Assembly: GCF_044704955.1 (NCBI RefSeq)
Contig: NC_091989.1
Location: forward strand, 21,824,001 to 21,888,000
Direction: 5' to 3'
Origin: Pristiophorus japonicus
Lineage: Eukaryota
Length of the DNA stretch: 64,000 nucleotides
The notes beneath the pieces are model-generated. The model saw only the letters and a program-made list of their open reading frames with translations. It was not told where the DNA came from and searched no databases. Both the position numbers and the translations under genes were made by a program. Below are positions 4,540 to 48,194 of this stretch, piece after piece (position 1 is the first letter of the stretch; each line of letters begins with the position of its first letter).

Positions 4540-4692
4540 TCTCATCAGAATCTTGTTGCTTCTTTTTCAGTTCCCAAATTCCAACTCTAACTCCAGTTCC
4601 AACTCCGATTAAAACCAGAATTACAGCTGTAATTCCCAGCCCTTTTTTCCAAACTGGATCTTTGGCATCAGTTCCAGTATCCTGTGGTGTAC
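4540..4692 (-). CDS. Gene B transmembrane exon (153 nt, phase 1-1)
   Basis: tatcctag acceptor and GTGAGT donor; encodes GTPQDTGTDAKDPVWKK-GLGITAVILVLIGVGTGVRVGIW-ELKKKQQDSDE, a hydrophobic helix followed by a basic stop-transfer. Confidence 0.85.
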
Positions 4693-4820
4693 CTAGGATA
4701 TTTAGCAGAAGTATGACCAAATGGTTAAAACTTTCTATTAGGAATTGAGATGAAACAAGATCACCAAATCTTCCTGTGAAATGGAGATATAGTTTTTTAA
4801 TAGTCTCGTAATAAATCTAA

Positions 4821-6012: not shown

Positions 6013-7133
6013 TTGTACTGATTTGAATTAAGTGAATCTTATCATAACTGTTGATCTATGTTCACTTGCTTTGTGAAACAAAGCAGCTGAATGATATACA
6101 TCTGCCCTCATTTTACCAAGTGTTCTCTGTCAGTCAGTAGAAAATGTCAGGGAGTCGGGAAGGAAAGTATGAGGTTTGATTTTCCTCTCCCATGCAGTGT
6201 GGGGATGCTCAGTTCCCAGACACGAAGAAAAGAAAAAAAGGCCGAGGAGATTCCAATGCTGGGTCTCCATCCACTTTACACTGCTTGGGATTTGCAGGGT
6301 TTCCCCGGAGAGGGGCGGGGCTGTTACACCTGGAGACATGCTAACAAGGCGAGCGAACATGTAACCAACAATCCCATCCCATCCTCCTCCACCACCAACA
6401 CCAGGCGGGTGAGGGGGATGCCCAATTGAAGTAGGTCTCACGCCCTGCGCCCAGCCTCTGACTGGAGAGCAGCAGGCAGCAGTGCCCTGCAGACAGGAGC
6501 AACCTTTTCCTCGCCAGGGATGGCAGCAGAGGGATCAGAGGTGGAGTTCTTCCGAGCTGATTAGGACAGCAACCAGAAGACCTTGAATCCGACAGCCCTA
6601 CTATAGGCCTCTTAGGTCTGCAGCAGTGGCAGGTTTCTGTTTTCATTAGATACTCAGTGTCAGGCTTGTGCCTGGGGTGCATTGGAAGCTCGTTACTTAC
6701 ATGAATCTGCAAATACAGGCAGCTTCAGGTCAAAGTTAAGTGGAATGCAGTTAAAATCTAAATACCAGATTAAAGGGGTAAATGTTATTCTTCTCAGACT
6801 GAAGAAAGATGGTGGGCTGAGTCAAATGATTCAAATGGAGAAAGTAATTGACAAGTGGATATTTTTACTCAAACTGGAGTAATATTCATCCTCTGTGCGG
6901 CATACAAGTGGCCCAACATGTGAACGATCCCTACTACACTACGCAATCTAACAAGCTCCATTCTCATGAACCTCCTCCAAATATGATCGCTTTAAAATAC
7001 ATCAAAGCTTTGCAGCAGTTCTGAGATTATGGGGGGAAATGTCAGATTTATTTGACTCCCTACCCTAGCACGATTCACTCAACAAAACTTGAGCCTATTT
7101 TCTTTTACTGCTGGGAGATGTCCACGTGCTCAC

Positions 7134-7481
7134 CAAGCAATTCCAGCTCCACCGTGTTCTCAATGTACCCCTTCCCGTCCTCTTGAACCACATAGCAGGT
7201 GTAGTTCCCCCTGTCTGATGCAGTCGCTCCTTTCAGTTTAAGAGCCGCATTCCCTTTCGGGAATTCCGAGGAAAACAGCTCGGTCCGTCCCCTGAAGGCT
7301 AGGTCCTGATACTCTGGATGGTCCACCTCACTGTAGAAGCTGTGAACCACTTTGTGACTGTCCGTCCGTTGCCAATTAACGACAAGATCCTGCAGATTGA
7401 ACCTGGCTGCAGCAGGGAAGGTGCAGGGCAGCAACACGTCTTCACCCAGGACTCCGTAGGCCCAAGAGAAAAATCCTTCAC
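7134..7481 (-). CDS. Gene B Ig V-set domain exon, B7/CD276/butyrophilin-like (348 nt, phase 1-1)
   Basis: ctttattag acceptor and GTGAGC donor; VLLPC..NWQRTD..VVHSFY..YQDLAFRGRTELF..GNAALKL..SDRGNYTCYV has both Ig cysteines, the C-strand Trp and DxGxYxC. Confidence 0.93.
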
Positions 7482-7784
7482 CTAATAAAGATATAGGACA
7501 TACAATATATATAATTTTGCAGACAAACATGGAGTCATTGGAATCATATATAGAAGAAACAAGAACACAGGAAGCATGAAAGAAGAGCCATTTGGCCAAT
7601 TGAGTGTGTCCATTCCATATACAATCGGTTGTGGGGCTTTCCACCCAACCTACTCAATCTCCCTAAGGGTGGACAAACTGCAAGAGAAAGCTGTAAAAGC
7701 TCTCTCTCCACTACAGGAAACAAGACAGGCGTGAAAAACATTAATCCAATTTACCAACCTGCACTTACAACCCAGCCTAGCTGT

Positions 7785-28820: not shown

Positions 28821-29151
28821 TTATGCAATGGTTAAGTAATCTTGCCAGCCCAGTTTTTTTTGCAGTTTGCGAATGTTCTCCTTTATTGTGTCTACCTTTG
28901 TCTTTGTGCTTTGGTTGACAACATGGCTCTTGCCTTCTTCAAGGTTCTTCAGTATGGTTTCCAGTAGGTTGGTAAGCCACACCCTATCATACCCTGCTGA
29001 TTGATTCATGACCTCTTCAATTTGTTCATAAACATGATCTATGAGTTCTTCATCTTCTGTAATATACGTAATGATCTTCAGACCAGGGCGGTGCTCTTTG
29101 AGGTGCTGAATATTTCTCTGACCACGCTCACCAAAGCTGTTTCCACATAAA
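28821..29151 (-). CDS. Gene A last coding exon: final LRR plus helical C-terminal tail and stop
   Basis: cattttcag acceptor, phase 2 matching the previous exon; (H)LCGNSFGERGQRNIQHL completes an LRR, then EDEELIDHVYEQIEEV...KENIRKLQKKLGWQDYLTIA*. Confidence 0.85.
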
Positions 29152-29817
29152 CTGAAAATGGCAAAAGGAATTTAGTTCTGAAAAGCCTTAAACATTGACA
29201 AGTCTTTCCCTATTGGCTCTGTGCACACTTACTGTCAACATGAAGAGGTGAAGTTACAGTGGCTCATTTAACCAAACTCAGTTGCACAGTATGTATATAG
29301 TGAAATGTTATTTATTGTATAATTCGCTGCATTACTCAGAGATAATTCCAATTTCTTTTCAATCTCAATTTTTTGAATTTTCTCTCCTTAGGACTCCTGT
29401 GTGTCATTCATGGGCATTGTCAATCCTGTCCAGTTGGTTCTCCTTAATGTGTGAATTGAGATAGTGAGGTAGGTTTTGCAAGGTTGCACTCCCAGTATTG
29501 AGCCACACTCGGGGAGTGGGGGGGTCAGAGAAAGAGTCACAACACTGTAGCCTGAATTATCTGACCTGTGGTCCTTTTGAGGGCAGCTCCACACTAGGAG
29601 TCCAAAATTGCGGAAGTTAACCTAGTGAGTGTTGGCAAGCTATTTGATCATGGGAGGCATTATAATTAACCCCAATGCTGTCCCTGGGTAATGTCTACAT
29701 GTGTATCATGGAACAACCCAGCAGGACAAGAGTTCTAAGCTGGTGAGCTTCACTTCAGGGAGAGAGACCATATCTGGGAAAATTTCCAAGTGCAGAAACC
29801 TCCCCACGTCCTGAAGG

Positions 29818-32285
29818 TAACCAAACTGGAAGCAATACGGTGGAGGAGGATTTCCTGGAGTGCATAAGGGATGGTTTTTTAGACCAATATGTCGAGGAAC
29901 CAACTAGGGGGGAGGCCATCTTAGACTGGGTGTTGTGTAATGAGAGAGGATTAATTAGCAATCTCGTTGTGCGAGGCCCCTTGGGGAAGAGTGACCATAA
30001 TATGGTGGAATTCTGCATTAGGATGGAGAATGAAACAGTTAATTCAGAGACCATGGTCCAGAACTTAAAGAAGGGTAACTTTGAAGGTATGAGGCGTGAA
30101 TTGGCTAGGATAGATTGGCGAATGATACTGAAGGGGTTGACTGTGGATGGGCAGTGGCAGACATTTAGAGACCGCATGGATGAACTACAACAATTGTACA
30201 TTCCTGTCTGGCGTAAAAATAAAAAAGGGAAGGTGGCTCAACTGTGGCTATCAAGGGAAATCAGGGATAGCATTAAAGCCAAGGAAGTGGCATACAAATT
30301 GGCCAGAAATAGCAGCGAACCCGGGGACTGGGAGAAATTTAGAACTCAGCAGAGGAGGACAAAGGGTTTGATTAGGGCAGGGAAAATGGAGTACGAGAAG
30401 AAGCTTGCAGGGAACATTAAGACGGATTGCAAAAGTTTCTATAGATATGTAAAGAGAAAAAGGTTAGTAAAGACAAACGTAGGTCCCCTGCAGTCAGAAT
30501 CAGGGGAAGTCATAACGGGGAACAAAGAAATGGCGGACCAATTGAACAAGTACTTTGGTTCGGTATTCACTGAGGAGGACACAAACAACCTTCCGGATAT
30601 AAAAGGGGTCGGAGGTCTCGTAAGGAGGAGGAATTGAGGGAAATCCTTATTAGTCGGGAAATTGTGTTGGGGAAATTGATGGGATTGAAAGCCGATAAAT
30701 CCCCAGGACCTGATGGACTGCATCCCAGAGTACTTAAGGAGGTGGCCTTGGAAATAGTGGATGCATTGACAGTCATTTTCCAACATTCCATTGACTCTGG
30801 ATCAGTTCCTATGGAGTGGAGGGTAGCCAATGTAACCCCACTTTTTAAAAAAGGAGGGAGAGAGAAAACAGGGAATTATAGACCGGTCAGCCTGACATCG
30901 GTAGTGGGTAAAATGATGGAATCAATTATTAAGGATGTCATAGCAGTGCATTTGGAAAGAGGTAATATGATAGGTCCAAGTCAGCATGGATTTGTGAAAG
31001 GGAAATCATGCTTGACAAATCTTCTGGAATTTTTTGAGGATGTTTCCAGTAGAGTGGACAAGGGAGAACCAGTTGATGTGGTATATTTGGACTTTCAGAA
31101 GGCTTTCGACAAGGTCCCACACAAGAGATTAATGTGCAAAGTTAAAGCACATGGGATTGGGGGTAGTGTGCTGACATGGATTGAGAACTGGTTGTCAGAC
31201 AGGAAGCAAAGAGTAGGAGTAAATGGGGACTTTTCAGAATGGCAGGCAGTGACTAGTGGGGTACCGCCAGGTTCTGTGCTGGGGCCCCAGCTGTTTACAC
31301 TGTACATTAATGATTTAGACGACGGGATTAAATGTAGTATCTCCAAATTTGCGGATGACACTAAGTTGGGTGGCAGTGTGAGCTGCGATGAGGATGCTAT
31401 GAGGCTGCAGAGCGACTTGGATAGGTTAGGTGAGTGGGCAAATGCATGGCAGATGAAGTATAATGTGGATAAATGTGAGGTTATCCACTTTGGTGGTAAA
31501 AACAGAGAGACAGACTATTATCTGAATGGTGACAGATTAGGAAAAGGGGAGGTGCAAAGAGACCTGGGTGTCATGGTACATCAGTCATTGAAGGTTGGCA
31601 TGCAGGTACAGCAGGCGGTTAAGAAAGCAAATGGCATGTTGGCCTTCATAGCGAGGGGATTTGAGTACAGGGGCAGGGAGGTGTTGCTACAATTGTACAG
31701 GGCCTTGGTGAGGCCACACCTGGAGTATTGTGTACAGTTTTGGTCTCCTAACCTGAGGAAGGACATTCTTGCTATTGAGGGAGTGCAGCGAAGGTTCACC
31801 AGACTGATTCCCGGGATGGCGGGACTGACCTATCAAAAAAGACTGGATCAACTGAGCTTGTATTCACTGGAGTTCAGAAGAATGAGAGGGGACCTTATAG
31901 AAACGTTTAAAATTCTGACGGGGTTAGACAGGTTAGATGCAGGAAGAATGTTCCCAATGTTGGGGAAGTCCAGAACCAGGGGACACAGTCTAAGGATAAG
32001 GGGGGAGCCATTTAGGACTGAGATGAGGAGGAATTTCTTCACCCAGAGAGTGGTGAACCTGTGGAATTCTCTACCACAGAAAGTTGTTGAGGCCAATTCA
32101 CTAAATATATTCAAAAAGGAGTTAGATGAAGTCCTTACTACTAGGGGGATCAAGGGGTATGGTGAGAAAGCAGGAATGGGGTACTGAAGTTGCATGTTCA
32201 GCCATGAACTCATTGAATGGCGGTGCAGGCTAGAAGGGCCGAATGGCCTAATCCTGCACCTATTTTCTATGTTTCTATGTTTCTA
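29818..32285 (+). mobile_element. Young 5'-truncated CR1 LINE, antisense in the last intron of gene A
   Basis: ORFs 29840..30637 and 30634..32187 (517 aa intact RT) are separated by a single frameshift; (TTTCTATG)n tail. Confidence 0.95.
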
Positions 32286-32929
32286 AACTAAAATCCCATA
32301 GCAACTTCAAGGACAATTGGACACAATGTTTATAAAGGGTGGCCGATCCACTATTACCAGACCACCACTGCAGTTGGATTTCAACCCCAGTGTCTGCCCA
32401 TTTCCGTCCTTTTAAAGGAGTGGCCAACTCAAGCTGACATTATCTAAATTAAGCAACTTTGTGTAGTCGTGAGTTAAGCTGAAATTATCAACATGAGAAT
32501 TTGTGATTTCAGTTTAATTTAATTTCCATCCCAAGTGGCATCAAGGCAATTCCGTGGGGAAAGAAATGAGCCCTGCTTCCCTTTGGAGATGGACTGACCT
32601 CGTACAACTACCGCAAAGCAAGAAAGGGGCTGGAGACTGAGAGGTAGAAAATAGAAGACATATTGAGCTGAGGGAGGGATGGACTATCAGGGAAACAGTA
32701 CAGCAGGGATGAAAAGAAAAAGGGGAAGAGAGGCTGAGGTGAAAGACAAGCAGAGGCACAAAGATGATGAGCAAGTAATGAGTCGATTTTAATTATGCAA
32801 TTCGTCATAGGGAGCAAAATCAAAAACTGGCAACCGAAGGGACAGGATGGTGCAATGGGTTGGACACTGACATTTCATCTCTAGGTGCTTGGTTTAAATC
32901 AAACATAAACAAACTGACTTCAGACTTAC

Positions 32930-33097
32930 TGCAGGATCTCAAGGGTTTCATTGTCTTCCAGACAGTGACACATCTGCTCTATGCCTTCATCAGTGATTTC
33001 ATTATCGTACAGGTAAAGGAATTTTAAACTTCTGTTTCTTTTGAGTGCTTCACACAACAGATGAGTTCCTCTGGATTTAAGGACATTTGTTCCAATT
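32930..33097 (-). CDS. Gene A LRR exon (168 nt, 2 x 28-aa RI-like LRR, phase 2-2)
   Basis: ctttttag acceptor and GTAAGT donor; IGTNVLKSRGTHLLCEALKRNRSLKFLYLYDNEITDEGIEQMCHCLEDNETLEIL. Confidence 0.93.
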
Positions 33098-33200
33098 CTA
33101 AAAAGGCACAAGAACAGTATTGTCATGGCTTGTACATTCCTCCAAAATCGATAGTCTTTTTGTTCTTTATTAACAGACGTTACACATTAGAAATACTTAC

Positions 33201-33287
33201 GATAACTTTTCAACAACACAATCTTTTTCTTTGAGAATGTCGTTGAAAACCTTGGCTGATTCCTCGGTCAGCTTGTTTGAGCTTACC
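33201..33287 (-). CDS. Gene A LRR exon (87 nt, one 29-aa LRR, phase 2-2)
   Basis: ctgttgcag acceptor and GTAAGT donor; (L)VSSNKLTEESAKVFNDILKEKDCVVEKL. Confidence 0.9.
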
Positions 33288-33439
33288 CTGCAACAGAGGT
33301 TGAAGACAATTTGAATGAGGGTTAAATTAAAATGTTGCATGCTCCAATCTAAGTTGAACAAGTTCGAGTTTCAGACATGTATGTTCTGAGGATCTGTAAC
33401 CTCACAGTATTAAAAAAAAAAAGGTGGCTCAAACAATTC

Positions 33440-34120
33440 GCTTAGCAAAGAATTTCAGAACCTTAGCGAAACAATGTCTGTATCACACAATGGAGAAACT
33501 ATCTGCAGAAACACGCAACGGAGGACACAAATCTTCTTCGATAATATTCCAAACTTTCAGGTTTGCAGGAGATGGCCAGGTATGAAAAGCCAAAGCAACA
33601 AGCAAAACCTCATGGTAACTGGCTCTATCCTCCATCGCACATTTGATCTTTTCTTCTCAACTACATGATGTCTCTGTCCAAACTCCTTGCTGGAATTGGT
33701 CTGGTGCATCAGAACTCGGGTTCTTTTCCATTGTAGTTCACCTCCTTTACTATCACCAGAAGCTTTGTTTAATATTTGGTCTTGACCACTGGAGACGCCT
33801 CTCTCACTGACGATCTTCTTTGCATTTCTGTACAACACCTAACACCTTCTCAAACTTCATCCTGCTGGTACCATCATCATTTCCTACCAGTCTGCACATC
33901 TGACTGTCCAGATCTATGAGCCTGATCGCTCTTAAAACATCAACTGCCATTCTCACTTTTCCTACTTTATACTTTCGAGAAACAAAAGGCAACTCCAGCT
34001 TGCCCATTGCCACATACCAATTTGTTCACCACCTGTTCACCTCCAGCCATCTCTGGGTCATCTTACTAATCTTTCCTTCAATTTCTTGACACAACAACCT
34101 GATGACTTCATATACCAGGA
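33440..34120 (-). mobile_element. Heavily decayed RLE-type non-LTR retrotransposon fragment (Hero/NeSL-like)
   Basis: Remnant peptides GKLELPFVSRKYKVGKVR, QQGVW and WPSPANL across broken frames; recognised by eye only. Confidence 0.4.
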
Positions 34121-34607
34121 GAATGAGCAGTTTGGAATTAGTAAGCAATTGTGAGCTAATAACACATCAGAGCATTGAGATAATATGACCATGGGACTGA
34201 AACTAGTGAGATAGGCTGGTCATAGAATCATAGAATGATACAGCACAGAAGGAGGCCATTTGGCCAATTGTGCTGTGTCAGCTCTTTAAAATAGCTATTC
34301 AATTAGTCCAACAATATTCTAGCTGGGGTCTAACCAGTGAGTTATAAAGGTTTAGCATACTTCTTTCATTCGGCATTCAATGCCTCTATTTATAAAGGCA
34401 AGGGTCCCATATGCTTTTTTAAAAAAAAACCACCTTCTCAACTAGTCCTGCCAACTTCAAAGATTTGTGTATTTAAACCTTGGTTTTGGTCTCCTTATCT
34501 GAGAAGGAACATACATGTCTTAGAGGTGGTAGATTTATCCTTGGGATGAGAGGGTTGTCCTATGAAGAGAGATTGAGTAGATTGGACCTATACTCTCTGG
34601 AGTTTAG

Positions 34608-35205
34608 GGGCCTGATATTGGTGACCTTACCGCCCACTGCCACGGAGGTTTGCCTCCGGTTTCTCCTCTCTCCCAGTTTGCATTTGGGCTGGAGCGGGTG
34701 GGAGGGGAGTACCGCCGGGAACTATCCTCTGGCGGCCAAGTAGTGCAAGTGGCCTCCCGCCCGCCGAGATGCCAGATTGGTGCGGGGGAAGGACCGCTGA
34801 GTGGAGGCAGGTCTAATCCCGACGGTAGGTATGAAGAATGGAAAAAAAGGTTAGTGAACATATTTAAAATTTTATTTTCACAGCGACTTACCTGGATGGG
34901 GTCTCCTGAAGGTGTTCTGTTGTTTTTTTTTTGTAATGCTTTTTATTTTCAGCTCTTCCGCCCTCCCTGGTCCCAACTCCATCCTTGGCGGCACTTGGGT
35001 GGCAAGTGCCTTTGCCGCCGAGATCGAGAGCTCCCACCCGCTGCCGCCCAGATTGACGGCATAAGCCGTTATTTTTCCGCCAGTAGGTACCGCCACCTCT
35101 TTCAGAGGAATCTTCCTGGCAAAGTACCGCCCGGTCGCTCGGCGGCCATCGGCAGTACTTTGAGTGGCACTTGGGTGGGCCTTGGCCTTCATCACTTTCG
35201 GGCCC
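34608..35205. mobile_element. Harbinger-type MITE inserted in a CR1 3' fragment (about 34480-35595)
   Basis: TIRs gggcctgatattggtga / tcatcactttcgggccc; TAG TSD (34605-34607 / 35206-35208); CR1 resumes after the insert. Confidence 0.8.
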
Positions 35206-35939
35206 TAGAAATCTGAGAATTGATCTCATTGAAACATAAGATTCTGAGGGGATTGACAAGGTATAATGCTGAGAGATTGTTTCCCCTGGCTGGATTATCT
35301 AGAACTAGGGGGCATAGTCTCAGGATAAGGGGTAGGCAATTTATGACTGGGGTGAGGAGGAATTTCTTCACTGAGAGGGTTGTGAATCTTTGGAATTCTC
35401 TACCCAAAGGGCTGTGGATGCTCAGTTATATAGTATATTCAAGGCTGAGATAGATAGATTTTTGTACTCTAGCGGAATCAAGGGATATGGGGATCAGGCG
35501 GGAAAGTGGAGTTGAGGTCAAAGATTAACCATGATCTTATTGAATGGCAGAGCAGGCTCAAAAGGGCCGTATGGCCTACTCCTACTTCTTATGTTCTCCA
35601 GCCCTACAACCCTTCGAAAACTTTACGTTCCTCCAACTCTGGCCTCATGTGCATCCCCGACTTTGTCCCAACGTTGGCGGCTGTGCCTTCAGCCATCTAG
35701 CCCCAAAGCTCTGCAGCCCTACCTAAACCTCTCTGCCGGTCACTTCTCTCTCCTCCTTTAAGATGCTGCTTAAAACCCACCTCTTTGACCAAGCTTTTGG
35801 TCACCTGTTTCAATGTCTCCTTCTATGATTCTGTTCAATTTTTGTCTGATTATGTTCCTGTGAAGTGCCTTGGGATGTATTACTATGTTGAAAAGGTGCT
35901 ATATAAATGAAAGTTATTACTGCTGTTGTTTTTACTCAC

Positions 35940-37674
35940 AAGATATGCTTGCTGCTCCGTAGCACCTCCTTGAGCTGTTTTATTCCGTCATCCCCTAGGG
36001 TACAGAGTCGTAAATCCAATTCTTCCACAGTGGAATGACTGAGACAGTAACATAAAGCAGAGATGTCTAGAGGACTCAGAGAAACGTTAAAAAACTCTAC
36101 ACGTTTGATACGAGGAGATACTTCTGCTGTTACAGTTGGATCATGCAGTTCAAAAAGATAACACATTAAATTCAGCAACTCTGACGACTTAATGTTTCGC
36201 TCGAGACAGTTTTTGAACCATGTTATGAGCGCTCTGGTTGTAGAATGAGTGAGAGGAGCTGTACAGTTCCACAACTTGCCGTCTCTTCCTGCTGTTAAGA
36301 AGCCCATGAGAAACCTGGTGAAATTGTACAGTTTCTCTGAGTATTCCGGCTGAAATGGTTGCAGATAAAATTGGCTATTTTGATTCCGTGGCGTTTCCCC
36401 AAAACACCAAAGATCCAGACATTTGACCAACTCTTCAGCATCATCATTCAGTGAAGTCGCACAATACAACGCTGCAAACTGCTCCTTCAGCACAACATGG
36501 TAGAACTCAAAGATATTTTGACCTTTACTCTTCTTTTCCAAGATAAAATTTGAGAAATACTCTGAAAGAATTTTTGGTTCTATTTTATAGGCATCCAGAT
36601 CATCTTTATTCATTTCAAGTTTCCCTGACAGCAGGTTGTTGAAGGACAGTGCCCCCAGTTTCAGGACAGTGTCTTGAAGCACTTTTACTTTCTGTTCAAT
36701 CTCACATTTATCAATAGCGATCACTATCTCTTCAGCTGAACTGCAGTTAAATAGATTGTAAAGGAACAGCAAGAACACTTTGCTGTGAGTCAGTGGCATT
36801 CTTGCCTTTGTCTCAGGACAGTCCCTACATCTGTCCAAAATATTGCACAGGATGTAGCTGTTGAGGGGATTAGAAGCCAGGCAGGTGATGGTCTCATTTT
36901 CTGTAAATTGCTTATACATTTTTGCTGCCGTTTCCTTTTCCTGACAGAACACTTCACAATATTTTTTCAATTGATCATTGGTAAACCCAGAGATAATAAG
37001 GATGCAATCAAAATGCTTTTTGTTAGATTCTATCTGCTTGGTATTCCATCGGGAGGTAACCAATACCTGTGCCTCTGGAAGGAGATCCCTGGAAATTATT
37101 TTGGATACAAGAACATTTACTTCAGCCTTTGTGTCCATGTTAAAATTACCATCTGGTGGATTCCATCGCAACTGATATCTGAATCCATCCAGTCCATCCA
37201 AAATGATCAACACATCATGAGGGTTTCGGAGAAGTTCAGTTAGGACTGATGACAATGGCTCGCACTGCTTCTTAAGCAGTTCCCGTAGAGTGATCTTTCC
37301 TTCAACCCCATTTAAGTCGGAAATTCTTAAAGCAATGACGCACTTAAACTGTGGCTCATTTGGATTTGATGCCCATTCTTGTTGAATCATACTCACTGCC
37401 CAGCTTTTACCCGCTGCCACATCTCCTACCAGTAAGGTTCGATTTGAGAGACGCTTTTCACTCTTGACCAAAGACAGCAGTTGTGTTGGTTGGATTTCTG
37501 TGGCTTTGTTTGATGCTGTGCTTTTGCTGATAGCGTCAATTCCATTTTCCTTTGGGTACAGAACATTTATACTTCGACTCAGGCTGCTGTAACGCCTGGG
37601 AATGCTGCCATTCAATGTTGCTATTTCTTCAGTAGGAATTTTCAAGATGTCATCTTTGTAATGTTGAATGGCAG
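35940..37674 (-). CDS. Gene A NACHT exon (1735 nt, phase 1-2): NACHT, winged helix, HD2 and first LRRs
   Basis: ttttgcttag acceptor and GTGAGT donor; Walker A LLVGDVAAGKS, Walker B VLIILDGLDG, sensor-1 VLVTSR, GFTNDQLKKYC, NPL, winged-helix FYHVVLKEQFAALY, FTRFLMG, LNLMCYLFE, LSPLDISALCYCL, LDLRLCTLGDDGIKQL. Confidence 0.96.
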
Positions 37675-37714
37675 CTAAGCAAAATAGATTTGAAAGTTTA
37701 TTTCCCACAACAAT

Positions 37715-39545
37715 AAACACTTGTATTTATATAGAGCTTTTAATGTAATAAAACATTCCAAGGCGCTTCACAGAACTGGTATAAAACAAAATTTGACATG
37801 AGCCACAGGAGGAGATATTAGGGCAGAAAGCTTGGTCAAAAGGGTAGGTTTTAAGGAGCGTCATAAAGGAGGAGAGAGATAGAGAGATGGAGAGGTTTAG
37901 GGAGGGAATTCTAGAGCTTAGGGCCTTGGCAGTTGAAGGCGCGGCCACAAATAGTGGAGCGATTAAAATAGGGGATGCTCAAAATGCCAGAATTAGAGGA
38001 GCGCAGATATCTCGGGGGTGGTGGTTGGGGGGGGGGGGCGGTGGTTGTGTGGCTGGGGGGGGGTGGTGGTGGTGGTTGTGTGGCTGGAGGAGATTACGGA
38101 GGTAATGAGGGGAGAGACCATGGAGGGATTTGAAAATAAGGATGATAATTTTAAAATCGAGGCATTGCTTAACCGGGAGCCAATGTAGGTCAGCGAGCAT
38201 AGGGGTGATGGATGAACGGGATTTGGTGCAAGTTAGGACATGGCCAGCCAAATTTTGGATGACCTCAAATTGATGTAGGGTAGAATGTGGGAGGCCAGCC
38301 AGGAGTGCATTGGAATAGTCAAAACTAGAGGTAACAAATATGGATGAGGGTTTCAGCAGCAGAAGAGCTGAGGCAGAGGTGGAGTCGGGTGGTATTACAG
38401 AGGTGGAATAGGCAATTTTTTATGTGGTCGGTAGCTCAAGATGGGCTCAAACACAAAACCAAGGTTGCGAGCACTCGAGGTTCAGCCTCAGACAGTTGGC
38501 AGAGAGAGGGATGCAGTTGGTGGCTATGGAACGGAGTTTGTGGCAGGGACCGAGGACAATAGTTTTGATCTTTCTAATATTTAGTTGGAGGAAATTTCTG
38601 CTCATCCAGTACTGGATGTCAGACACTTTAGAGAACGTGGTGGGGTCCAGAGAGCTGGTGGTGAGGTAGAGTTGGGTGTCGCCAGCATACATGTGCAAAT
38701 TTACACCATGTTTTTGGATGATGTCACCGAGGGGCAGCATGTTGATGAGAAATAGGAGGGGGCCGAGGATAGGTCCTTGCGGAATACCAGAGGTAAATGT
38801 GCTGGAGCGGGCGAAAAAGCCATTGTAGGTCATTCTCTGGCTGCGATTAGATAGATAAGAATGGAACCAGGTGAGTGCAGTCCCTCCCAGCTGGATGACA
38901 GCGGAGAAGTGTTGGAGGAGGTCAAGGAGGGATAGTTTATCTCTGTCAGTCACATAGGATTTCACTTGTGACTTTGATAAGAGCTGTGTTGGTATTGTGG
39001 CAGGGGCGGAAACCTGCTTGGAGGGATTCAAACATGGAGTTCTGGGAAAGATGGGCACAGATTTGGGAGGCAACAACACATTCAAAGAATTTGGAGAGGA
39101 AAGGGATGTTGGAGATGGGGTGGTAGTTTGCAAAGACGGAGGGATGAAGTGTTGGCTTTTTGAGAAGTAGTGTGATGACGGCAGATTTGATGGAGATTGG
39201 GACAGTACCTGAGGAGAGACAACCATTAATATCAGCTAACATGGGAGCCAGGAAGGGAAGTTGAGTGGTCAGCAGTTTAGTGGGAATAGGGTTGAGGAAG
39301 CAGGAGGTGAGTCTCATGGACAAGATGAGCATGAGGGCAGATAGGAGAGAAACTAGAGAATGACACGAGTTCAAGGCTAGGGCAGGGGAAGTTTGGCCTG
39401 GTGAGCTAGGGGAAGGAAGAGACGTGTTAGACACAGCTGATCAGATGGTCACAACCTTAGTGATAAAGAAGTCCGTGATCTCTCTGCACTTGTTGTTGGA
39501 GATGAATGTGAAAGAGACCGGGGACAGGGGGTTAAGACAGAAACC
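37715..39545 (-). mobile_element. L2-clade LINE fragment
   Basis: ORFs 38946..39434 and 38447..39226 (GIPQGPILGPLLFLI..HMYAGDTQLYL). Confidence 0.9.
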
Positions 39546-39907
39546 AGTTCTCTGGATGTCTGATGGTGACCTGTGTGACCCCAATACTGTGCTCTGTGTC
39601 CTGGACAGTTGGCTCGGTGGCCCCATTGTTGGATTTATAAATCTTTATATAATGTACATTTACTACATTTTCCAGATGATATTGATTGAATCTTCGTTGA
39701 ACTGCCCAAGCAACCACTCACTGGAGTTTCTGGTGGGGACTGAGCATTCCCTGCCCGATAGGGAGCCAAGTCTGTCAATCAGACTGGCTTCTGGCCAGGG
39801 AACCTACTGGGGAAAAACACAGCACAGCGTGTGGGGAAAACCAGACTTCCCCGTGACCAAAATTTCTCCCCCCGCTCACCAAACCCGCCCCAGTAAATAT
39901 TGGGGCC

Positions 39908-40495
39908 TTAGAATGCAAAAGCAAGGAAGTTATATTAAACCTTTATAATTCATTGGTTAGGCCCCAGCTGGAATATTATGTCCAATTCTGGGAACCAACT
40001 TTAGGAAGGCCTTGGAGAGGGTGCATTGGAGATTTACTAGAGTGGTACCAGGAATAAGGGTCTTCAGTTACGTGGAGAGTCTAGAGAGGCTGGGATTGTT
40101 CTTCTTAGAGCAGTGAAGGTTAAGGGGAGATTTAAGAGGTGTTCAAAATCATTAAGGGTTTTGATAGAGTAAATAAGGAGAGTCTGTTCTACTGACAGAA
40201 GGGTCAATAACCAGGGGACACAGATTTAAAGTAATTGACAAAAGAGCCAGAGGTAAGATGAGAATTTTTTTTTTTACGCAGTGAGTTGTGATCTGGAATG
40301 CACTGCCTGAAAGGGTGGTGGAAGCAGATTCAATATTAACTTTCAAAAGGGAATTGGAACACGATAGGGTGAAAATTGCAGGGAATATGGGGAAAGAGCA
40401 AGGGAGTGGGACTAATTGGATAGCTCTTTCACAGGCGCGACAGACCAAATGGCCGCCTTCTGTGCTGTAAGATTCTATGATTCTACGATTCTATT
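39908..40495 (+). mobile_element. CR1 3' fragment
   Basis: IWNALPERVVEADSILTFKREL; attctatg-type tail. Confidence 0.8.
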
Positions 40496-40602
40496 CTTTC
40501 ACATTGAACAGGATGTCCAAAAATGCTTTGTGACCAATTAATTACTTTTAAAGTATTATCGTATGCATCAGCCTGTTTATGGTAGGAAAATGTACTTTGT
40601 CA

Positions 40603-40737
40603 AGGGTATCACCTTTGGCTCAGTTGGTAGCACTTTCGCTTCTGAGTCAGAAGGTCATGAGGTCAAGTCTTACTCCAGACACTTGAGCACAAATCTAGGC
40701 TGAGACTCCAGTACAGTACTGAGGGAATGCTGCACTA
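40603..40737 (+). mobile_element. tRNA-derived SINE head plus start of Deu domain
   Basis: A-box tggctcagttgg, degenerate B-box ggtcaagtc, then ggctgagactccagtacagtactgaggg. Confidence 0.6.
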
Positions 40738-41325
40738 AATCACTTGATCTCAATTTTAGTGTCTCATCCAACAGAATGCACCTTCATGCTTCGTTGGTAC
40801 ACCCAACTGTGTCTGATTTTGCTCTTGGTAGTTAGTTTTCTGATAGACTTTACAAGACTTCAAAAGACAGCAAAGAACAAAGAGTTTGATTCTGAGCAAA
40901 ATCTAATATACAATAAATGGGGAGAAAATCACTTGACCAAAATAGTGATACACAGGTATGAATTTCTTCAAAGGGGCAGTCTCCCTTCGTGATTATTTTT
41001 TCTCCATAGATGCTGGCAAATGTTAACCATATTTAGTAGCTGAATTTCTTTCAAAGAATGAAGACCATGTGCCAGAAATGACTTGCTAATGTTAGATGAT
41101 AACACTCAACATATTCACGTAACATTCCTTTTTCTGTTTTAGTGGAGACAATAGCCCATTTAAAATAAATGTAACACCTGTGTTGAAATGGTGAAATGGG
41201 CGAATGTGTTAAGTATTGTCCACTGAAACCATCACCAGTCCTTTTTAAGGCCCATGCCTATGGTTGGTAATATAGTGTCTATCCCACAAGCAGATTCACC
41301 TTGGTTGGACAGCAATAAGCCTTTG

Positions 41326-41826
41326 TAGAATCATAAACTATAGTACAGCACAGAAGGAGCTATTCGGGCCATCGAGTCTGCGCCGGCTCTTTTAAAGAGC
41401 AATCCGTTATTCCCACTCAACCACTCTTTCCCATATTCCTGCAATATTTTCTCCTTCAAGTATTTATCCAATTCCCTTTTGAAGGCTACTATTGAATCTA
41501 TTTCTACTTCCCTATTGGGCAGTGCATTCCAAATCCTAACCATATGTTGTGCAAAAATGTTTTCCATTATGTCGCCTCTGGTTCCTTTGTAAATCTGTGT
41601 CCTCTGGTTACTCTCCAGCCATTAGAAACCGTTTCTCTTTATTTACTCTATCTAAACCCTTTATGATTTTAAACACCTCTATCAAATCTCCTCTTAGACG
41701 TCTTGTGGCTCTAAAGAGAACAACCCCAACTTTTCCAGTCTATTGACGTTACTGTAATCTCTTATCCCAGGAACTATTCTAGCAAATCTCTTCTGTACCC
41801 TCTCGAAAGACTTTATGTCCTTCCTT
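41326..41826 (-). mobile_element. CR1 3' fragment
   Basis: ORF 41331..41567 RIWNALPNREVEIDSIVAFKRELDKYL. Confidence 0.8.
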
Positions 41827-41879
41827 ACTTACAAAAGCAGAAAGATTTAGCTCTCAAATAAAAGAGTTGAACTCATTAC

Positions 41880-41912
41880 CTTGTATAGCATCAGCTGCCA
41901 GGAATGGTGTTT
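41880..41912 (-). CDS. Gene A juxtamembrane mini-exon (33 nt, (K)TPFLAADAIQ, phase 1-1)
   Basis: Strong polypyrimidine acceptor ttttatttttctctctag and GTAATG donor; paralogous to 3561-3590; phase joins the NACHT exon in frame. Confidence 0.8.
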
Positions 41913-42796
41913 CTAGAGAGAAAAATAAAACCAATTAGTGGCTGTTAAGAGTTATAGGATAAATAAAGACAGTTATTGGACCTCATGTCAATTGATGGGC
42001 TTTATTCACAAATAATTAAGTTCCAAACATTAGCCCAAAACGGAACACTTATATCCTACTAAAGAGCAACAAACCTGAAAGGATAGCCACCATCTTTAAT
42101 GAAAAATAATCAAATGCTATTATTATACTCTCGTACTTAGGATTGCAGCCCATTATCCTCATCTACAAGCTTCTCTATGACCTCAGACCTCTCTGTCTTT
42201 CCAACCTCCCCAAGCCTTACGAGGGTGAAATTGTTCTCGGGCAATATCGCAGAATGGACGATAGCGAATCGTAAGCCCATTTTATATCCCATTGAATTTC
42301 TTTTCCATAAACCAGAGACCAATTTCATCCGGGCATCATTGTTTGTATCCTCCACTAATCCAACTCTGGTCGATTGTATGTTCCCCCTCCCTCCGTTCCA
42401 ACCATAAGTGTCAGGGCCTTCAGCCATCTCACCCCAAACTCTCAAACTCCCCATAAACCCCTCTGCCTTCCTTCATCTTTTCCCACCTTCAAAAGCCTCC
42501 AGAAAATCCCAGCTCTTTCACCACCTGTTCAGTCACTTCTCCTCATTCTCCTACTCCAACTTGGACCTGATGACCAACTGTGTAGTGCCTTAGACTAACA
42601 GGAATAGTAGTTGTGAAAATTCAACAACCACATTACCTATTAATAAAAGATCTGATGATAAATCTATTCTAGCATAATTGACAGTTTTCACACATAATGT
42701 CGACACTGGTAATGTTTCATTGTAAAGAGAATCATTATGTTCAAGATATGTTTCTGTTGATGAAAACAAGCAGCTATTCTTAAATACTTGACTTAC

Positions 42797-42958
42797 TTTC
42801 AGTGCTAAGGTTTTGTCGTTTGTTGCTTTTGATTTTCCAAGTTCCAATTCCAATTGCAGTTGCAACAGTTCCAGCTAGGAGTGCACACATGATCAGTACT
42901 ATGATTCTGCTGCTTCCTTTTTCGGTTGGATCTTTTGGGTCATGTCCAATGGGTGTAT
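42797..42958 (-). CDS. Gene A transmembrane exon (162 nt, phase 1-1)
   Basis: tacttcag acceptor and GTAAGT donor; DTPIGHDPKDPTEKGSSR-IIVLIMCALLAGTVATAIGIGTW-KIKSNKRQNLSTE. Confidence 0.88.
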
Positions 42959-43908
42959 CTGAAGTATCAGGACAAGTATAACGTGACATTTGAGAAAGGC
43001 TCTTCAGGGAATGGAGACAGCAGAGGATCAGAGGAGCAGACGACTGTTGTGAAGTGCTCGCATCACTAAACAATTTCCAGCTGTCCCCTACCGAACTCGA
43101 GATACTTGACTTTTTCAATCATTTTACACTAAACTAACAGATGGAAGCTACTGATCAATGAGATTGATTAAAATTCAGGCAGATTTTTTTAAATTCACGA
43201 TTGGATTAAAATTATTCTTCACAAAACATAAACCACAAACATAACAAAAGAATATTATACATTTTATTTTATTATACATTATAAATATAAATTTATTATT
43301 TACAAATAAATAATACAATAAAGGCACTGCTTTTAGTTTGTATATTTTTGCCATTTACGAATGCAGCCTATTAACTCCCACAACTCATTGCTCACACTCC
43401 TTATTTTCCTTCAAAACATCAGTCCTCTACATTAAAGAGTTTCCAAATGCTGTCGTTGTTATTCAGAAGACTTGAATATGGCTATTGTCCGGAAACAGGA
43501 TTGGAAATACAAAATCCTAAGCCTGAAACGTGGACAATGGGTAGGATTCAGGAGAGAGGATTGAGCACCATTGCTGACAATTCAGGGGTGGAGGAAATAA
43601 CACTGGTCTTTAAATCAGAGTTTTCAAGGAGCACAAGTTTATTGAGGGTGCAAAGTGGGAGGCCTGCCATGAGAGAACTGGAACAGTCGATTCTGAACCT
43701 AACAAAAGCATGGATGGAGGCAGTAGATGGGCTGAGGCAGGGGTGGAGACGGGCGATATTACCGAAGTGGAAGTAGCTGGTCTTTGTGATGTTGGTATGT
43801 TAATATCATACAGCAAAATGTTAATGCCGCTGAGTATAAGTTGACCAGTATAAGTCGGCATGGGCTTGATGGGCCAAATGGTCTTCTTCCGTGCTGTAAC
43901 CATTCTAT

Positions 43909-45170
43909 GGGCCCAAGTTTCGACTGTCCCACAGAACAGTGCACCTCCGAGAGGCACGCCTATTTTCTGGAACATAAAGTGCACCTATTACTAACCTCGG
44001 TATTTTCTGATATTTTTCGGGCCCTTTCCAGGTCGGCGCGGCGCTGCTGGGGATGGGGCCAAGGCATTGCGACGAAGAACTGCCGGCAGGGGAGTGGGGC
44101 TAGGGCCCAACGTCAATTTTAGTGCCGGCAGCCTTGCGCATGCGCGCTAGAGTGTGCGCGCATGTGCAGTAGCTCCGCGGAGCCTGAATCTCTGCGATGC
44201 TGTGTGGGAGGGGCCTGAAGCACGCCGCCCCTAGTCCTGGCCGAATGGGCTCCCCGGGCATTGAAGATGTGCTTAAATAGTTATCGGGACATCCACACCG
44301 ATTATCGTTGGGATGATGATCAGTAACAGGGCAGAAAACTCGCACACAGCCCCATTTAACAAGACTATGTTCTGGCTGTGAGAAAACACTCCAGGTAAGT
44401 GGCTGATATGGACTCGTGACTGAAAAGCTCAGATGTGGGACCTGCCCGATATTGACGACTGTGAGCTGGACTCGGGATCCATGTCTTTGAACATTCTCTG
44501 ACAACCACAGATTTCGGCAAAGTAAGGAGATGACACTTCAAGACTGCATCCGCAGGGAGCGTGCCTACACTGGGGGAGAAACATCCTGCTTTTATTCCGG
44601 ACTGGTTGGAATTCTCAAAGTGGAATCTTGCAATCTGGAAGCACCAAATTCATAAACACTTAAATTAATAATTGTCTAGGTACAAAATACGCCAATTCCG
44701 GTGCGTGCTCCAGTCGGCAAGGTAGGACTTCTAATTTTTGTTACTTGATTTAATGTTCATTTATTATTTAAAAATTATGATGGTTTCTATGCATCTTTAT
44801 GGTTAAAAGTGAAGTGTTTAATGCTTTGTAAAATCCCCTAACTTCCCTCTAACTTCCGTTCCACCCCTATCTCTCGTTGCCTGTGCCTAATTTATAAAGT
44901 GTAGGCAAGGTTTTTCTGAGCATACAAAAATCTACACTTACTCCATTCTAAGTTAGTTTGGAGTAAGTTTTTGCTGCCTAAACTTGCAAGACAAGCGTAA
45001 GTGGCTGGTAATGCCCCCTTTTGGAAAAAAAAAACTGTTCTAAAATGAAACTATTCTAACTAACTAGAATTGGAGCAAACTAAATGCCGAGAATTGCAAT
45101 TTCTAAGATACTCCATACTAAACTAGTTGCTCCAAAAAATTAGGAGCAACTCGAGCCGAAACTTGAGCCC
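43909..45170. mobile_element. Non-autonomous DNA transposon (Harbinger-like MITE), copy 1
   Basis: TIRs gggcccaagtttcg / cgaaacttgagccc; both arms homologous to 45454-46893. Confidence 0.8.
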
Positions 45171-45453
45171 TCTGATTCTAAGTTACTGCTATGGATTAAT
45201 GGGCTGCACCCAGAATATTATAACCAGGTCTAGGTTCTATCTATTAAATACTTGCAGAAGGCAACAGCTGCTCTGGAAATGAATAACATGGATCACTCCC
45301 AAGGTCAGAATAGTTAGGCTAATTGAAGGAACTCATTATTGGAGTGGTAGCAAGTATGTTTGTGCCGGATGTGGGTCACAACATACAATGTGAGAGTAGA
45401 ATTTTCTCCCTTTTTTTCTAAGAAATTTAGAATGAAACTGTTAACATGATATT

Positions 45454-46893
45454 GGGCTCAAGTTACGAGCCGCGCCTAGAACGGCGCAGTCCCGTCCTGG
45501 ACGCCCGTTTTTCGCGCCACAAAGTGCGCCTAAAAAAATCTTCCAGATTCTCCAGCTCCCTGCAGGTCGTTTGCAGCTCGGCACAGCGCAGCACGAGCTG
45601 TAGGGGGCGGAGCCAGGTCCCTGCGCTGAAAACAGTGCCGGGACCTCTGCACATGCGCGCTACAGTGGGCGCGCATGTGCAGTAGCTCCAGGCGCCAAAA
45701 ACTGTGTGGGAGGGGCCGAAGCACGCAGCCCCTAGCCCTGGCCGAATGGCCTCACTGGGGCTGCATGAATAAGGCTCCTCCCACGGCCAGCTCCTGCTTC
45801 CTCCCGACCCGACTCGACTCCCGCTTCCCGGACCCGACACCGACTCCCGCTCCCCCCCCGCCCCTGGACCGGACCTGACCCTGACCCCCCGGACTGGACC
45901 CGACCCGACTCCCGCTTCCCCCCGCCCCCCGCCTCCGGACCAGACCCGACACCAACACCGACCCGACTCCCGCTTCCCCACCCCCCCCTGCCGACTGGAC
46001 CCGACCTGACCTCCCTCCCCCAGACCTGACCTCCCTCTCCCTCCCTCCCCCCAACCCGAACCGAACCGACCTCCCTCCCACCACCCCCCCGACCCCGACC
46101 CGACCCAACGCCACCTACCTGTAAATCTGATGCTGGGGACGGGCCCTGCCCAAAGTCTCGGGCCCGGCCCGTTCAGCCTCCCTCCCCCTTCTCCTTTCCC
46201 CCCCCCTCCTTTCCCCCTTCTCCTTTTGCCCTTCCCCCCTCTCCTCCTCCCCCCCCCCTCCCCCTTCCCCTCGCTGTCAGAAACACAGACACTGACAGAC
46301 AGAGAATGAGAGACACACACAGACAGACAGAGAGATAGAGACACTGACAGAGTCACACTGGGGGGCATCCCAGCACGCTGTTGGAAGGCTCCCGGTGCTG
46401 CAGTCGGTAAGTAGGAAATGTTTTATTTATTGATTTAAAAATTTTTTATTTCTTATTAATTTTTTTTGATTGATTTATTGGTTGATTTATTGATGTTTTT
46501 ATTAGTTATTATTGATGATGGCTCTTTATTTGTAAAACTGAAGTGTTTAATGTTTGTAAACTTCCCTTTAAACCCCCCCCCCCCCATTCCCTACGCCTGA
46601 TTTGTAACCTATGCCTGATTTTCTAAAGTGTAGACAAGGTTTTTTCAAAAATCTTCACTTACTACATTCTAAGTTAGTTTGGAGTAAGTTTTCACTGACG
46701 AAACTTTGAAAACAGGCATAAGTGGCCGGACACGCCCCCTTTTGGGAAAAAAAAATTCTGTTCCAAAGTGAAATTGTTCTAACTGACTAGAACTGGAGCA
46801 AACTAAATGGCGAGAATTCCGATTTCTAAGATACTCCGTTCTACACCAGTTGCTCCTAAAAATCAGAAGCAAATCATGTGGAAACTTGGGGCC
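45454..46893. mobile_element. Same MITE family, copy 2, with internal (CCCGA)n, C/T-rich and (CA/GA) simple repeats
   Basis: TIRs gggctcaagtta / gaaacttggggcc; shared blocks gcatgtgcagtagctcc and ctaagttagtttggagtaagtttt. Confidence 0.8.
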
Positions 46894-47316
46894 TATATGT
46901 CAGCAGGCAGAATGCTGAAAAACAAAAAGGTTCCACTACTCTGAGAGCGCTAAAATTAGGGACAGATTTATAGAATGTTCTCTTGACGAGCAGTTTCTTG
47001 TGCCTCTAGTCCAATCATATTACCTCAAAATATCTCACTCAAGAATTTTGATCAGAATGATCACTAAATACATCTAATGAAAACTAAACCATGCGTGTGC
47101 CAATATTTATTTCAGCAGCAACCCTATTTTTGGTGTAATTACTCATAAGTTTCCAGTTAATTATACCAGCATTGATACGCAACTGCATTAAGTCAACTGA
47201 ACCTACTGTTAAGGAGCACATCTTACTAAAATATAATTTCCATAACTGCAGGATTTTTAAGACCTTTCACCAATTTGTACAAACTAGCTACATTGACATT
47301 TATAAACCTTGCTCAC

Positions 47317-47664
47317 CAAGCACATTCAGTTGCACCACGTTCCTGATGTACCCCTTCCCATCCGCTTGAATCACATAGCACGTGTAGTTTCCCGTATCTG
47401 ATGGAGTGACTCCTTTTAGTTTAAGAGTCGCATTCCCTTTGGGGAATTCCTGGGAAAACAGCTCGGTTCGTCCCCTGAAAGCTTTGTCCTGATGCTCTGG
47501 ATGGTCCACCTCACTGTAGAAGCTGTGAACCACTTTGTGACTGTCCGTCCACTGCCAGTTAATGACAAGATTCTGCAGATTGAACCTGGCTGCAGGATGG
47601 AAGGTGGAGAGCAACAACACTTCTTCACCCGGGACTTGATATACTTGAGAGAAAGCTGCTGTTT
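47317..47664 (-). CDS. Gene A Ig V-set domain exon, B7/CD276/butyrophilin-like (348 nt, phase 1-1)
   Basis: ctcttcttcag acceptor and GTGAGC donor; NWQWTDSHKVVHSFY..QDKAFRGRTELF..GNATLKLKGVTPSDTGNYTCYV; 86/116 aa identical to the gene B IgV; two NxT sequons. Confidence 0.93.
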
Positions 47665-48127
47665 CTGAAGAAGAGGAGACATATTGTGAAGCAGTTACTT
47701 CTTTTCGACATCTTACCTAGTTGTAATGGGAAACCAAGTGTCACTAGTTTCGATCTGTTGACCTGACTACCCAGCCCGATACATCAACGCGTGCTGGAGA
47801 TTTGATGGATGATGTAGTTTGAGGAAGAGAGCAGCTTTTAACATCTTCCAGAACTACTGCTGAGGAGCCATAACAGTAACAGAAGAGTTGCTGGATTCCC
47901 AATCAGAGTTTGAATTACAAGCTGAAGACAGCCAGAGGTTGATTCACGGGTGGTAGGACAGACCACTAGTTCCAGTACGTCACAGGGGGAAGGGAGAGGG
48001 ACACTATCGAGGTCAGCTAAACCCTGTCTGGCCCATCGACAAAATCAACTGACTTGAGGACTTAAAGAACCAGAGATCAGACTCTGCACAGACATAAAAC
48101 TCCTGAGTAAAAAAAGATTACACTTAC

Positions 48128-48194
48128 CAAGCATAGGATATTGGAATATTAGGATAGCAAATCGTATTGAGTATTTAAGAGACACCATCTTCAT
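48128..48194 (-). CDS. Gene A signal-peptide exon (MKMVSLKYSIRFAILIFQYPML; exon acceptor at 48202)
   Basis: ttgatttgcag acceptor, gagATG start, basic-then-hydrophobic 22 aa, GTAAGT donor in phase 1. Confidence 0.8.

Follow-up and report, generated by a model that had tools for sequence, protein, structure and literature searches.

An expressed gene of Pristiophorus japonicus encodes a predicted membrane-integral NLR with a B7-type IgV ectodomain and belongs to a family found from chimaera to frogs

Analysis of a 64,000-nt stretch of Pristiophorus japonicus DNA without any N (hereafter the window, to which all coordinates refer) led to a gene on the minus strand between 48194 and 28821, termed here gene A. 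Gene A is real and expressed. Its protein presents, in this order, a signal peptide, a single immunoglobulin V-type (IgV) domain, one transmembrane (TM) helix, a short linker, a NACHT domain, a winged helix/HD2 region, five leucine-rich repeats (LRRs) and a three-helix tail. The same order had been put forward in an original prediction on this DNA, and it stands, for one gene and one transcript. The best overall explanation, to which we assign a probability of roughly 0.6, is that gene A is an expressed type I IgV-TM-NACHT-LRR gene of an ancient jawed-vertebrate family, whose product would work by the coupling mechanism proposed below. The features of gene A are as follows:

Exon 1, 48128..48194, minus strand: start codon, signal peptide MKMVSLKYSIRFAILIFQYPML and phase-1 donor; 100% identical to residues 1-22 of the public protein P0032.
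Exon 2, 47317..47664, minus strand: IgV domain of the B7-H3/B7-H4 type with a GNAT glycan sequon, B-strand Cys replaced by Ser; V-set 9e-11, CD276 2e-27.
Exon 3, 42797..42958, minus strand: stalk, single predicted TM helix IVLIMCALLAGTVATAIGI (Kyte-Doolittle 2.48) and basic stop-transfer stretch; spliced contigs cover 42797-42959.
Exon 4, 41880..41912, minus strand: 33-nt mini exon KTPFLAADAIQ, which at the position of the family motif [DE]xxxL[LI] reads EKTPFL; both flanking junctions are present in spliced contigs.
Exon 5, 35940..37674, minus strand: linker, NACHT (Walker A GDVAAGKS, Walker B LIILDGLDGF), winged helix, HD2 and first LRR; the junction 41880>37674 is present in contigs.
Exon 6, 33201..33287, minus strand: one LRR of the ribonuclease-inhibitor (RI) type, 28-29 aa.
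Exon 7, 32930..33097, minus strand: two LRRs (LRR_6).
Exon 8, 28821..29151, minus strand: last LRR, three-helix C-terminal tail of the 'A type' and stop TAA.
5' extension of exon 3 in isoform X2, 42959..43001, minus strand: public protein P0001, 855 aa, lacking signal peptide and IgV.

The exons were searched one by one, while the joined forms used in searches were the public proteins P0032 (gene A) and P0002 (gene B, the neighbouring copy described below). Exon-wise translation found all eight exons open in the phases first assigned to them, with a summed length of 2931 nt, and the intron ends all follow the AG...GT pattern with a polypyrimidine tract ahead of the AG. P0032, a 976-aa protein of P. 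japonicus annotated as 'NOD1-like isoform X1', equals the gene A model, junction residues included, and tblastn placed it onto all eight exons at 100% identity (exon 8 displays 98% because the alignment overruns the acceptor). Therefore, the eight-exon, single-frame model with GT-AG ends is right, and it was already present in automatic annotation under a misleading name. The NACHT exon is also 100% identical to P0001, the isoform X2 of the same species, of which P0032 is a cluster mate. Two further claims about the region around this exon proved correct. Firstly, the exon has no plausible start of its own, as its first in-frame Met sits behind the P-loop. Secondly, the 4.2-kb intron preceding it holds no CARD or PYD exon: Pfam matched its open reading frames to a reverse-transcriptase fragment or to nothing, none of them being of the death-fold type. 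A hidden effector exon at this place is ruled out by that search together with the transcript, which splices straight across.

The NACHT exon is contained in three runs of one 2024 study, whose contigs were placed on 37300-43200. In each run, one minus-strand contig (815, 815 and 574 nt, respectively) joins 42797>41912 and 41880>37674 exactly, and the skipped stretches have the ends CT..AC, which is GT..AG on the gene strand. These two junctions had been named beforehand as decisive, and both are used, without deviation, in all three runs. Depth was zero in the unique intron bins (40846-41239, 42028-42618 and 43013-43200), with exon bins at 66, 126 and 7. Since exons are covered and unique intron sequence is not in any of the three runs, the spliced contigs derive from RNA, and an origin from DNA such as a processed copy is unlikely. 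Each contig additionally carries 207 nt upstream of the TM exon that are not found on 42960-43200. This stretch is therefore not the X2 extension and its source lies further upstream. The X2 extension itself was not seen in the spliced contigs of the three runs, where depth is zero at 43013-43200 and contig pieces end at 42959; its product would be a TM-anchored NLR with a stub of ~35 aa outside. A T>G difference (plus strand) occurs at 42902 in the contigs of two of the three runs; by our count it affects the first base of an Ile codon (residue 19 of the translated exon 3), turning it into a Leu codon close to where the TM helix begins, and is probably an allele. In a skate-like species, a 982-aa V-set+NACHT protein (P0008) is encoded on a Logan contig of 3341 nt, which is too short to hold introns of such size, so an intron-free transcript exists there as well. 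Finally, fragments of long interspersed nuclear element (LINE) type are located at 38447-39434 (minus strand), 26758-28090 and 29840-32187 (plus strand), that is, in introns 4 and 7 and downstream of gene A. Their reverse-transcriptase reading frame was recognized by Pfam for 38447-39226 and the others by eye, and their very high contig depth in the runs indicates that these repeats are abundant or transcribed.

The same data bear on whether two adjacent genes, a B7-like IgV-TM gene and an NLR gene, were merged by the prediction software or joined in a chimeric assembly. Such a reading could draw on a 214-aa product with IgV and TM only (P0129), encountered in Logan contigs of a skate-like species, and on the early stop, a few codons on, that a transcript reading through the exon 3 donor would meet. 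It is opposed, however, by the contigs of three runs that connect the TM exon to the mini exon and the mini exon to the NACHT exon at the predicted sites, by a NACHT exon without a usable start, by an exon order and phases conserved in >30 species from chimaera to frogs, by the continuous V-set+NACHT frame of P0008 on its 3.3-kb contig, and by congruent trees of the IgV and NACHT halves. The spliced contigs, the conserved collinearity and the startless exon rule it out in our judgement, and we consider it close to refuted.

Concerning the ectodomain, the best solved relatives of the IgV are CD276/B7-H3 (2e-27) and VTCN1/B7-H4 (4e-16), followed by MOG, BTN3A and PD-L1, in agreement with the B7/butyrophilin type originally assigned to it. 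Exon 2 carries the GNA[ST]L sequon of the B7 type and places a B7-type V-set (9e-11) in the membrane-distal position typical of that family. Pfam gave no second Ig match and in the public model the stalk/TM exon follows directly on the IgV exon, so that no IgC domain is present; equally, there was no SPRY/PRY match and the B30.2 domain of butyrophilins is absent. A hydrophobic stretch of 19 residues in exon 3 (Kyte-Doolittle 2.48) is followed by a net charge of +4. Such an arrangement points to a type I topology, in which the NACHT-LRR part would be cytosolic and the IgV, glycosylated, would face the outside or the lumen. Within exon 5, Pfam recognized NACHT (1.7e-19), NOD2_WH and NLRC4_HD2, and LRR_6 was matched in exons 5-7; the nearest solved sequences of the NACHT are NLRP9 (3e-17), NLRP6 and NLRP3. 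The five RI-type LRRs of 28-29 aa extend across exons 5-8 and show the beta-alpha repeat pattern at a high predicted local distance difference test score (pLDDT). The AlphaFold model has a mean pLDDT of 65; IgV, LRRs and tail are modelled with confidence, residues 155-179 are predicted to form a helix and residues 180-263 a disordered linker, and by fold the model matches the structures of NOD2, NLRP3, NLRP9 and NLRP1. PF27087, which lay outside the Pfam copy used, is listed for family proteins in precomputed annotation; as it also occurs in RanGAP-like LRR proteins, it was taken as an LRR-type model. The protein thus has a NACHT with Walker A and B, a winged helix/HD2 region with the nucleotide-sensing His, and C-terminal LRRs, which together make up the NLR core. 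Neither the gene A protein nor its introns yielded a CARD, PYD or BIR in Pfam, so that the N-terminal effector of an NLR, and the pyrin domain of an NLRP in particular, are absent. Judged on its sequence, gene A is an NLR by its core that departs from the class in its N-terminus and in its predicted location, which is not cytosolic.

Gene A is not isolated. V-set+NACHT proteins with 57-76% identity over the NACHT exon were identified in Heterodontus, Mustelus, Scyliorhinus, Chiloscyllium, Stegostoma, Pristis, Mobula, Narcine, Hypanus and Hemitrygon, a collinear relative is also present in Rhinoraja, and further members occur in Heptranchias, S. torazame and the chimaera Callorhinchus milii. 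A search of 1.84 billion representatives used a profile built from 14 elasmobranch proteins, and its best 150 matches were listed. Single-stretch matches from IgV to tail, running from profile positions ~5-18 to ~950-965, were obtained in Pleurodeles, Discoglossus (two), Hyperolius and Lepisosteus. Cluster mates add Atractosteus, Rhinatrema, Protopterus, Pyxicephalus and Ambystoma, and the V-set+NACHT combination was confirmed in Pelodytes, Pelobates, Mantella and Ranitomeya. The family is accordingly represented in sharks, rays, chimaera, gars, lungfish and all three amphibian orders, and gene A aligns with it collinearly over the full length, from the IgV to the C-terminal tail. No mammal, bird or teleost member appeared in word-based searches or among the minority of the best 150 matches whose source was looked up, which is weak evidence that these groups lack the family. 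Elasmobranchs (with sharks and rays apart), gars and tetrapods were recovered in two separate trees, one computed from the IgV and the other from the NACHT-helical region. Since both follow the species tree, the two halves have been together since the jawed-vertebrate ancestor. Public names of the members conflict, being NOD1-, NLRC3-, NLRC5- or NLRP1/3/5/6-like, with at least six contradictory names in use. The hybrid receptor originally proposed is therefore upheld in its architecture; as a new gene model or a peculiarity of sharks it is not, because it was already in public annotation with relatives from chimaera to frogs.

Several relatives deserve separate mention. The coelacanth models are partial, and in one of them (P0046, Latimeria chalumnae) a V-set comes after an HD2, as would result if the predictor had merged two tandem genes of the family. 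P0016 of Alligator sinensis is a relative without IgV and without the P-loop GKS, and looks like a relic. The nearest relatives outside the family match it from the NACHT to the C-terminal tail and carry a CARD (P0054, Spea bombifrons) or an unassigned N-terminus of 240 aa (P0058, Alosa sapidissima), which implies that the N-terminal module was swapped within this NLR clade. P0129 and its cluster mates, from Logan contigs of 1.1-1.7 kb, consist of signal, IgV, TM, the dileucine exon and a short unrelated end, and represent either a short IgV-TM isoform or an unspliced precursor. Finally, in the predicted isoform P0007 (Stegostoma tigrinum isoform X2) the stalk/TM exon is skipped and the cytoplasmic part comes straight after the IgV; this may be a form that is not membrane-bound, or an artefact of prediction.

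Conserved features could be compared in 31 members. A hydrophobic 19-mer follows the IgV in 30 of them (Kyte-Doolittle >=1.7; >2.0 in 28/31), with basic residues next to it. Downstream of this helix, at a distance of 8-15 residues, 23/31 members have a [DE]xxxL[LI] motif. Gene A is the one exception among the chondrichthyans, and the motif is also present in both gars, the caecilian, one salamander copy and several frogs. Acidic dileucine signals are read by AP-1, AP-2 and AP-3, and the motif may accordingly be a candidate endocytic or sorting signal. The N-glycan sequon GNA[ST] is kept across the family. Elasmobranchs show little or no variation in the Walker A GKS, the Walker B DGLDE, the TSR sensor and the winged-helix His, and H596 is invariant in their alignment. 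Between elasmobranchs and bony vertebrates, identity amounts to 39% in the IgV, 36% in the nucleotide-binding domain (NBD) and 44% in the LRRs, but to 16-17% in the TM and linker. An IgV as conserved as the NBD, next to a far more variable TM and linker, shows that the ectodomain is under a constraint of its own.

Gene A is accompanied by a tandem paralogue, gene B, arranged head-to-tail downstream of it and bearing the canonical Cys, the Walker B Glu and an EKAPLL motif. That the flagged copy is the derived member of a tandem pair was absent from the earlier reading. Two exons of gene B are located in the window:

Gene B IgV exon, 7120..7488, minus strand: canonical LLPCTF; public protein P0002, 996 aa, 'NLRP6-like'.
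Gene B stalk/TM exon, 4541..4705, minus strand: the NACHT exon of gene B lies beyond the window start.

Gene A reads LLLSTF where the family has LLPCTF, and so has lost the B-strand Cys and left the F-strand Cys unpaired. Its P-loop is GDVAAGKS instead of GDxGVGKS, its Walker B is DGLDGF instead of DGLDEF (the Glu is kept in 12/13 other elasmobranch sequences), and at the position of the sorting motif it has EKTPFL instead of E..PLL, with loss of the dileucine. It is a family member by descent, atypical at the sites of the putative Ig disulfide and juxtamembrane dileucine. Its branches are ~3x longer than those of gene B, and the IgV exons of the two copies give a dN/dS of 0.61 at a dS of 0.26. 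Identity between A and B is 74-83% from the IgV through HD2 and only 42% in the tail. In a tree of the LRR-tail, gene A groups with P0004 of Mustelus asterias (SH-aLRT 99), and this pair is sister to all other elasmobranch tails, rays included; the A-type LRR-tail is 68-70% identical between gene A and Mustelus. The mosaic reflects either gene conversion homogenising the 5' halves or the retention of an old A-type 3' cassette. Because the A-type tail forms an old clade of its own with Mustelus, the A lineage has been kept since before the split of the two shark superorders.

It could be argued that gene A is a duplicate in decay, turning into a pseudogene, and that gene B is the only functional copy. 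The missing Ig B-strand Cys, Walker B Glu, P-loop Gly and dileucine Leu, the long branches and the IgV dN/dS would all fit such a course. Decay is at odds, though, with an intact frame of 976 codons having all its splice sites across the eight exons, with correctly spliced expression at contig depths of 66 and 126, and with the long-kept lineage shared with Mustelus, and we consider it improbable. As the lineage is maintained, expressed and intact, we read gene A, with modest confidence, as a specialised partner rather than a dying copy; most likely it would act as a hydrolysis-poor, surface-retained partner or modulator of gene B.

In the mechanism that we propose together with the type I family reading, the protein would cycle between the cell surface and endosomes by means of the juxtamembrane acidic dileucine, the conserved IgV would bind a conserved and probably host-encoded partner, and the nucleotide switch of the NACHT would couple both sides of the membrane by oligomerisation. 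The direction of coupling may be outside-in, engagement and clustering of the IgV driving NACHT oligomerisation at the membrane and the LRR-tail offering a cytosolic output surface. Ig-TM-TIR receptors signal outside-in by induced oligomerisation. Because of this logic, the precedent of the sea cucumber receptor AjNLRC4 (compared below), the short and invariant LRRs and the internalisation motif, our analysis slightly favours outside-in coupling, tentatively and at less than even odds.

Several points weigh against the type I family reading and the mechanism attached to it. Localisation, ligand, oligomerisation and signalling direction are all predictions. The library type of the three RNA runs is not on record, and for the 207 upstream nt the IgV exon is the expected source, the contigs having been placed on 37300-43200, short of the IgV side of the junction 47317>42958. 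The [DE]xxxL[LI] motif is short and absent from 8/31 members, and the changes in gene A could equally mean early decay. Pfam recognized no CARD, PYD, TIR or B30.2 effector in the cytosolic part, which weakens the outside-in direction and suits the opposite one. Additionally, STAND ATPases, including NLRs, sense with their C-terminal repeats and produce their output through the N-terminal domain, and an arrangement of this kind favours signalling from the inside out.

According to this inside-out alternative, which resembles butyrophilin action, the NACHT/LRR-tail would sense a cytosolic cue, oligomerise, and cluster or reorient the surface IgV for display to a lymphocyte or natural killer cell receptor. 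Apart from the STAND logic, it is consistent with the CARD that the nearest non-family relative (P0054 of Spea) has where the family has IgV-TM, and with an IgV that belongs to the B7 ligand type and equals the ATPase in conservation, as expected for a protein facing a host counter-receptor. Nevertheless, just five highly conserved LRRs make a small sensing surface, the conserved endocytic motif is better suited to a receptor that internalises its ligand, and no counter-receptor is known; we take inside-out display as possible, and as less likely than outside-in coupling.

A third option is that the membrane part serves as a tether. TM and dileucine would then put a cytosolic sensor on endosomes or phagosomes, where it would detect escaping material, and the IgV would be used for sorting or cis-assembly without binding a signal. 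Palmitoylation places NOD1 and NOD2 on membranes. In most members the [DE]xxxL[LI] lies close to the TM, and the public isoform X2 keeps the TM and drops the signal peptide and IgV. AjNLRC4, an echinoderm analogue, is internalised with its bacterial ligand and the bacteria reach lysosomes (PMC8699970). On the other hand, an IgV conserved like the NBD over ~450 million years (My) with its glycan sequon kept is hard to square with a passive domain, and X2 is missing from the spliced contigs of the three runs, so a pure tether seems unlikely to us. Thus, outside-in coupling comes slightly first, inside-out display second and the endosomal tether third, and the computed data do not separate them. 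The two functional proposals of the original prediction, display from the inside out and oligomerisation from the outside in, gain no support from the computations and are not contradicted by them.

Taken further, the type I family reading would make these proteins an ancestral jawed-vertebrate class of single-pass membrane NLRs, in which a B7-H3/B7-H4-like IgV is wired to a STAND switch within one polypeptide. We put this forward as a rather doubtful possibility. If it were true and the direction inside-out, the family would constitute an NLR-based 'stress display' to lymphocytes, paralleling and predating butyrophilin signalling. Tandem A/B copies could form sensor/helper pairs, and the loss in amniotes would mean that the innate immunity of textbooks, which is that of mammals, lacks a real part of the ancestral one.

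The usual teaching is that vertebrate NLRs are sensors located in the cytosol and equipped with death-fold effectors, and reviews and censuses treat them as cytosolic as well (e.g., PMC12436146, PMC11258412). In the full-text literature we found no description of a vertebrate Ig-TM-NACHT protein; subscription journals are mostly outside this coverage, so an earlier description is possible. An unnamed novel NLR family near the NLRPs was reported from the whale shark genome, without any link to Ig or TM (PMC8455134), and may be a different family. The vertebrate-wide IgV-TM-NACHT-LRR family appears to be undescribed though present in databases. Among the N-terminal modules of vertebrate NLRs it represents a fourth kind; it connects B7/butyrophilin with NLR, both of them large families of immune genes, and offers a concrete, testable case of a STAND ATPase signalling across a membrane. 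Naming it would correct comparative NLR censuses, and its function can be tested, as gar, axolotl and Pleurodeles, all of them genetically tractable, have members.

Compared with known systems, the family has the same NACHT, Walker A/B, sensor-1 Arg, winged-helix His, HD2 and RI-type LRRs as the vertebrate NLRs (NLRP9, NLRP6, NLRP3, NOD2). Unlike them, it has no PYD, CARD or BIR, its signal peptide, IgV and TM predict a membrane-integral rather than a cytosolic protein, and gene A has only five LRRs followed by a conserved three-helix tail. With B7 proteins and butyrophilins (CD276/B7-H3, VTCN1/B7-H4, MOG, BTN3A1) it shares the IgV signature GRT.LF…GNAS/T L.L…D.G.Y.C.V and, specifically with butyrophilins, the type I layout with a cytoplasmic sensor-type module (a topology that is predicted here). 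It differs from them in its single IgV without IgC and in a cytoplasmic NACHT-LRR that replaces the B30.2 or short tail. Ig-TM-TIR receptors (IL-1R family) and TLRs follow the same logic, in that recognition takes place in an extracellular domain, a single TM crosses the membrane and induced oligomerisation makes the cytosolic domain signal, but the cytosolic domain of the present family is a STAND ATPase with its own autoinhibition and not a TIR, and there is no sequence relation. TM-bearing NLRs have also been predicted in anthozoans and sponges, with 3-5 N-terminal TM helices and no Ig ectodomain (PMC5094078, PMC12909245). These are likewise NACHT proteins predicted to be membrane-bound, uncharacterised and, unlike gene A, devoid of an Ig ectodomain. 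A precedent in layout is provided by the sea cucumber Apostichopus japonicus, whose AjNLRC4 has been characterised as a membrane receptor with extracellular Ig and intracellular NACHT (PMC8699970; PMC13133943), and a further sea cucumber case is AjNLR-new (PMC13133943). The claim in the original prediction that no characterised receptor has this architecture was therefore too strong, given AjNLRC4 and the predicted anthozoan and sponge proteins. The comparison with AjNLRC4, made by its published description, shows the same arrangement of Ig outside and NACHT inside (predicted in our case). AjNLRC4 is described as having two TM, no LRR and another type of Ig, whereas gene A has one TM with a signal peptide, and LRRs; the sea cucumber architecture most likely arose by independent domain shuffling.

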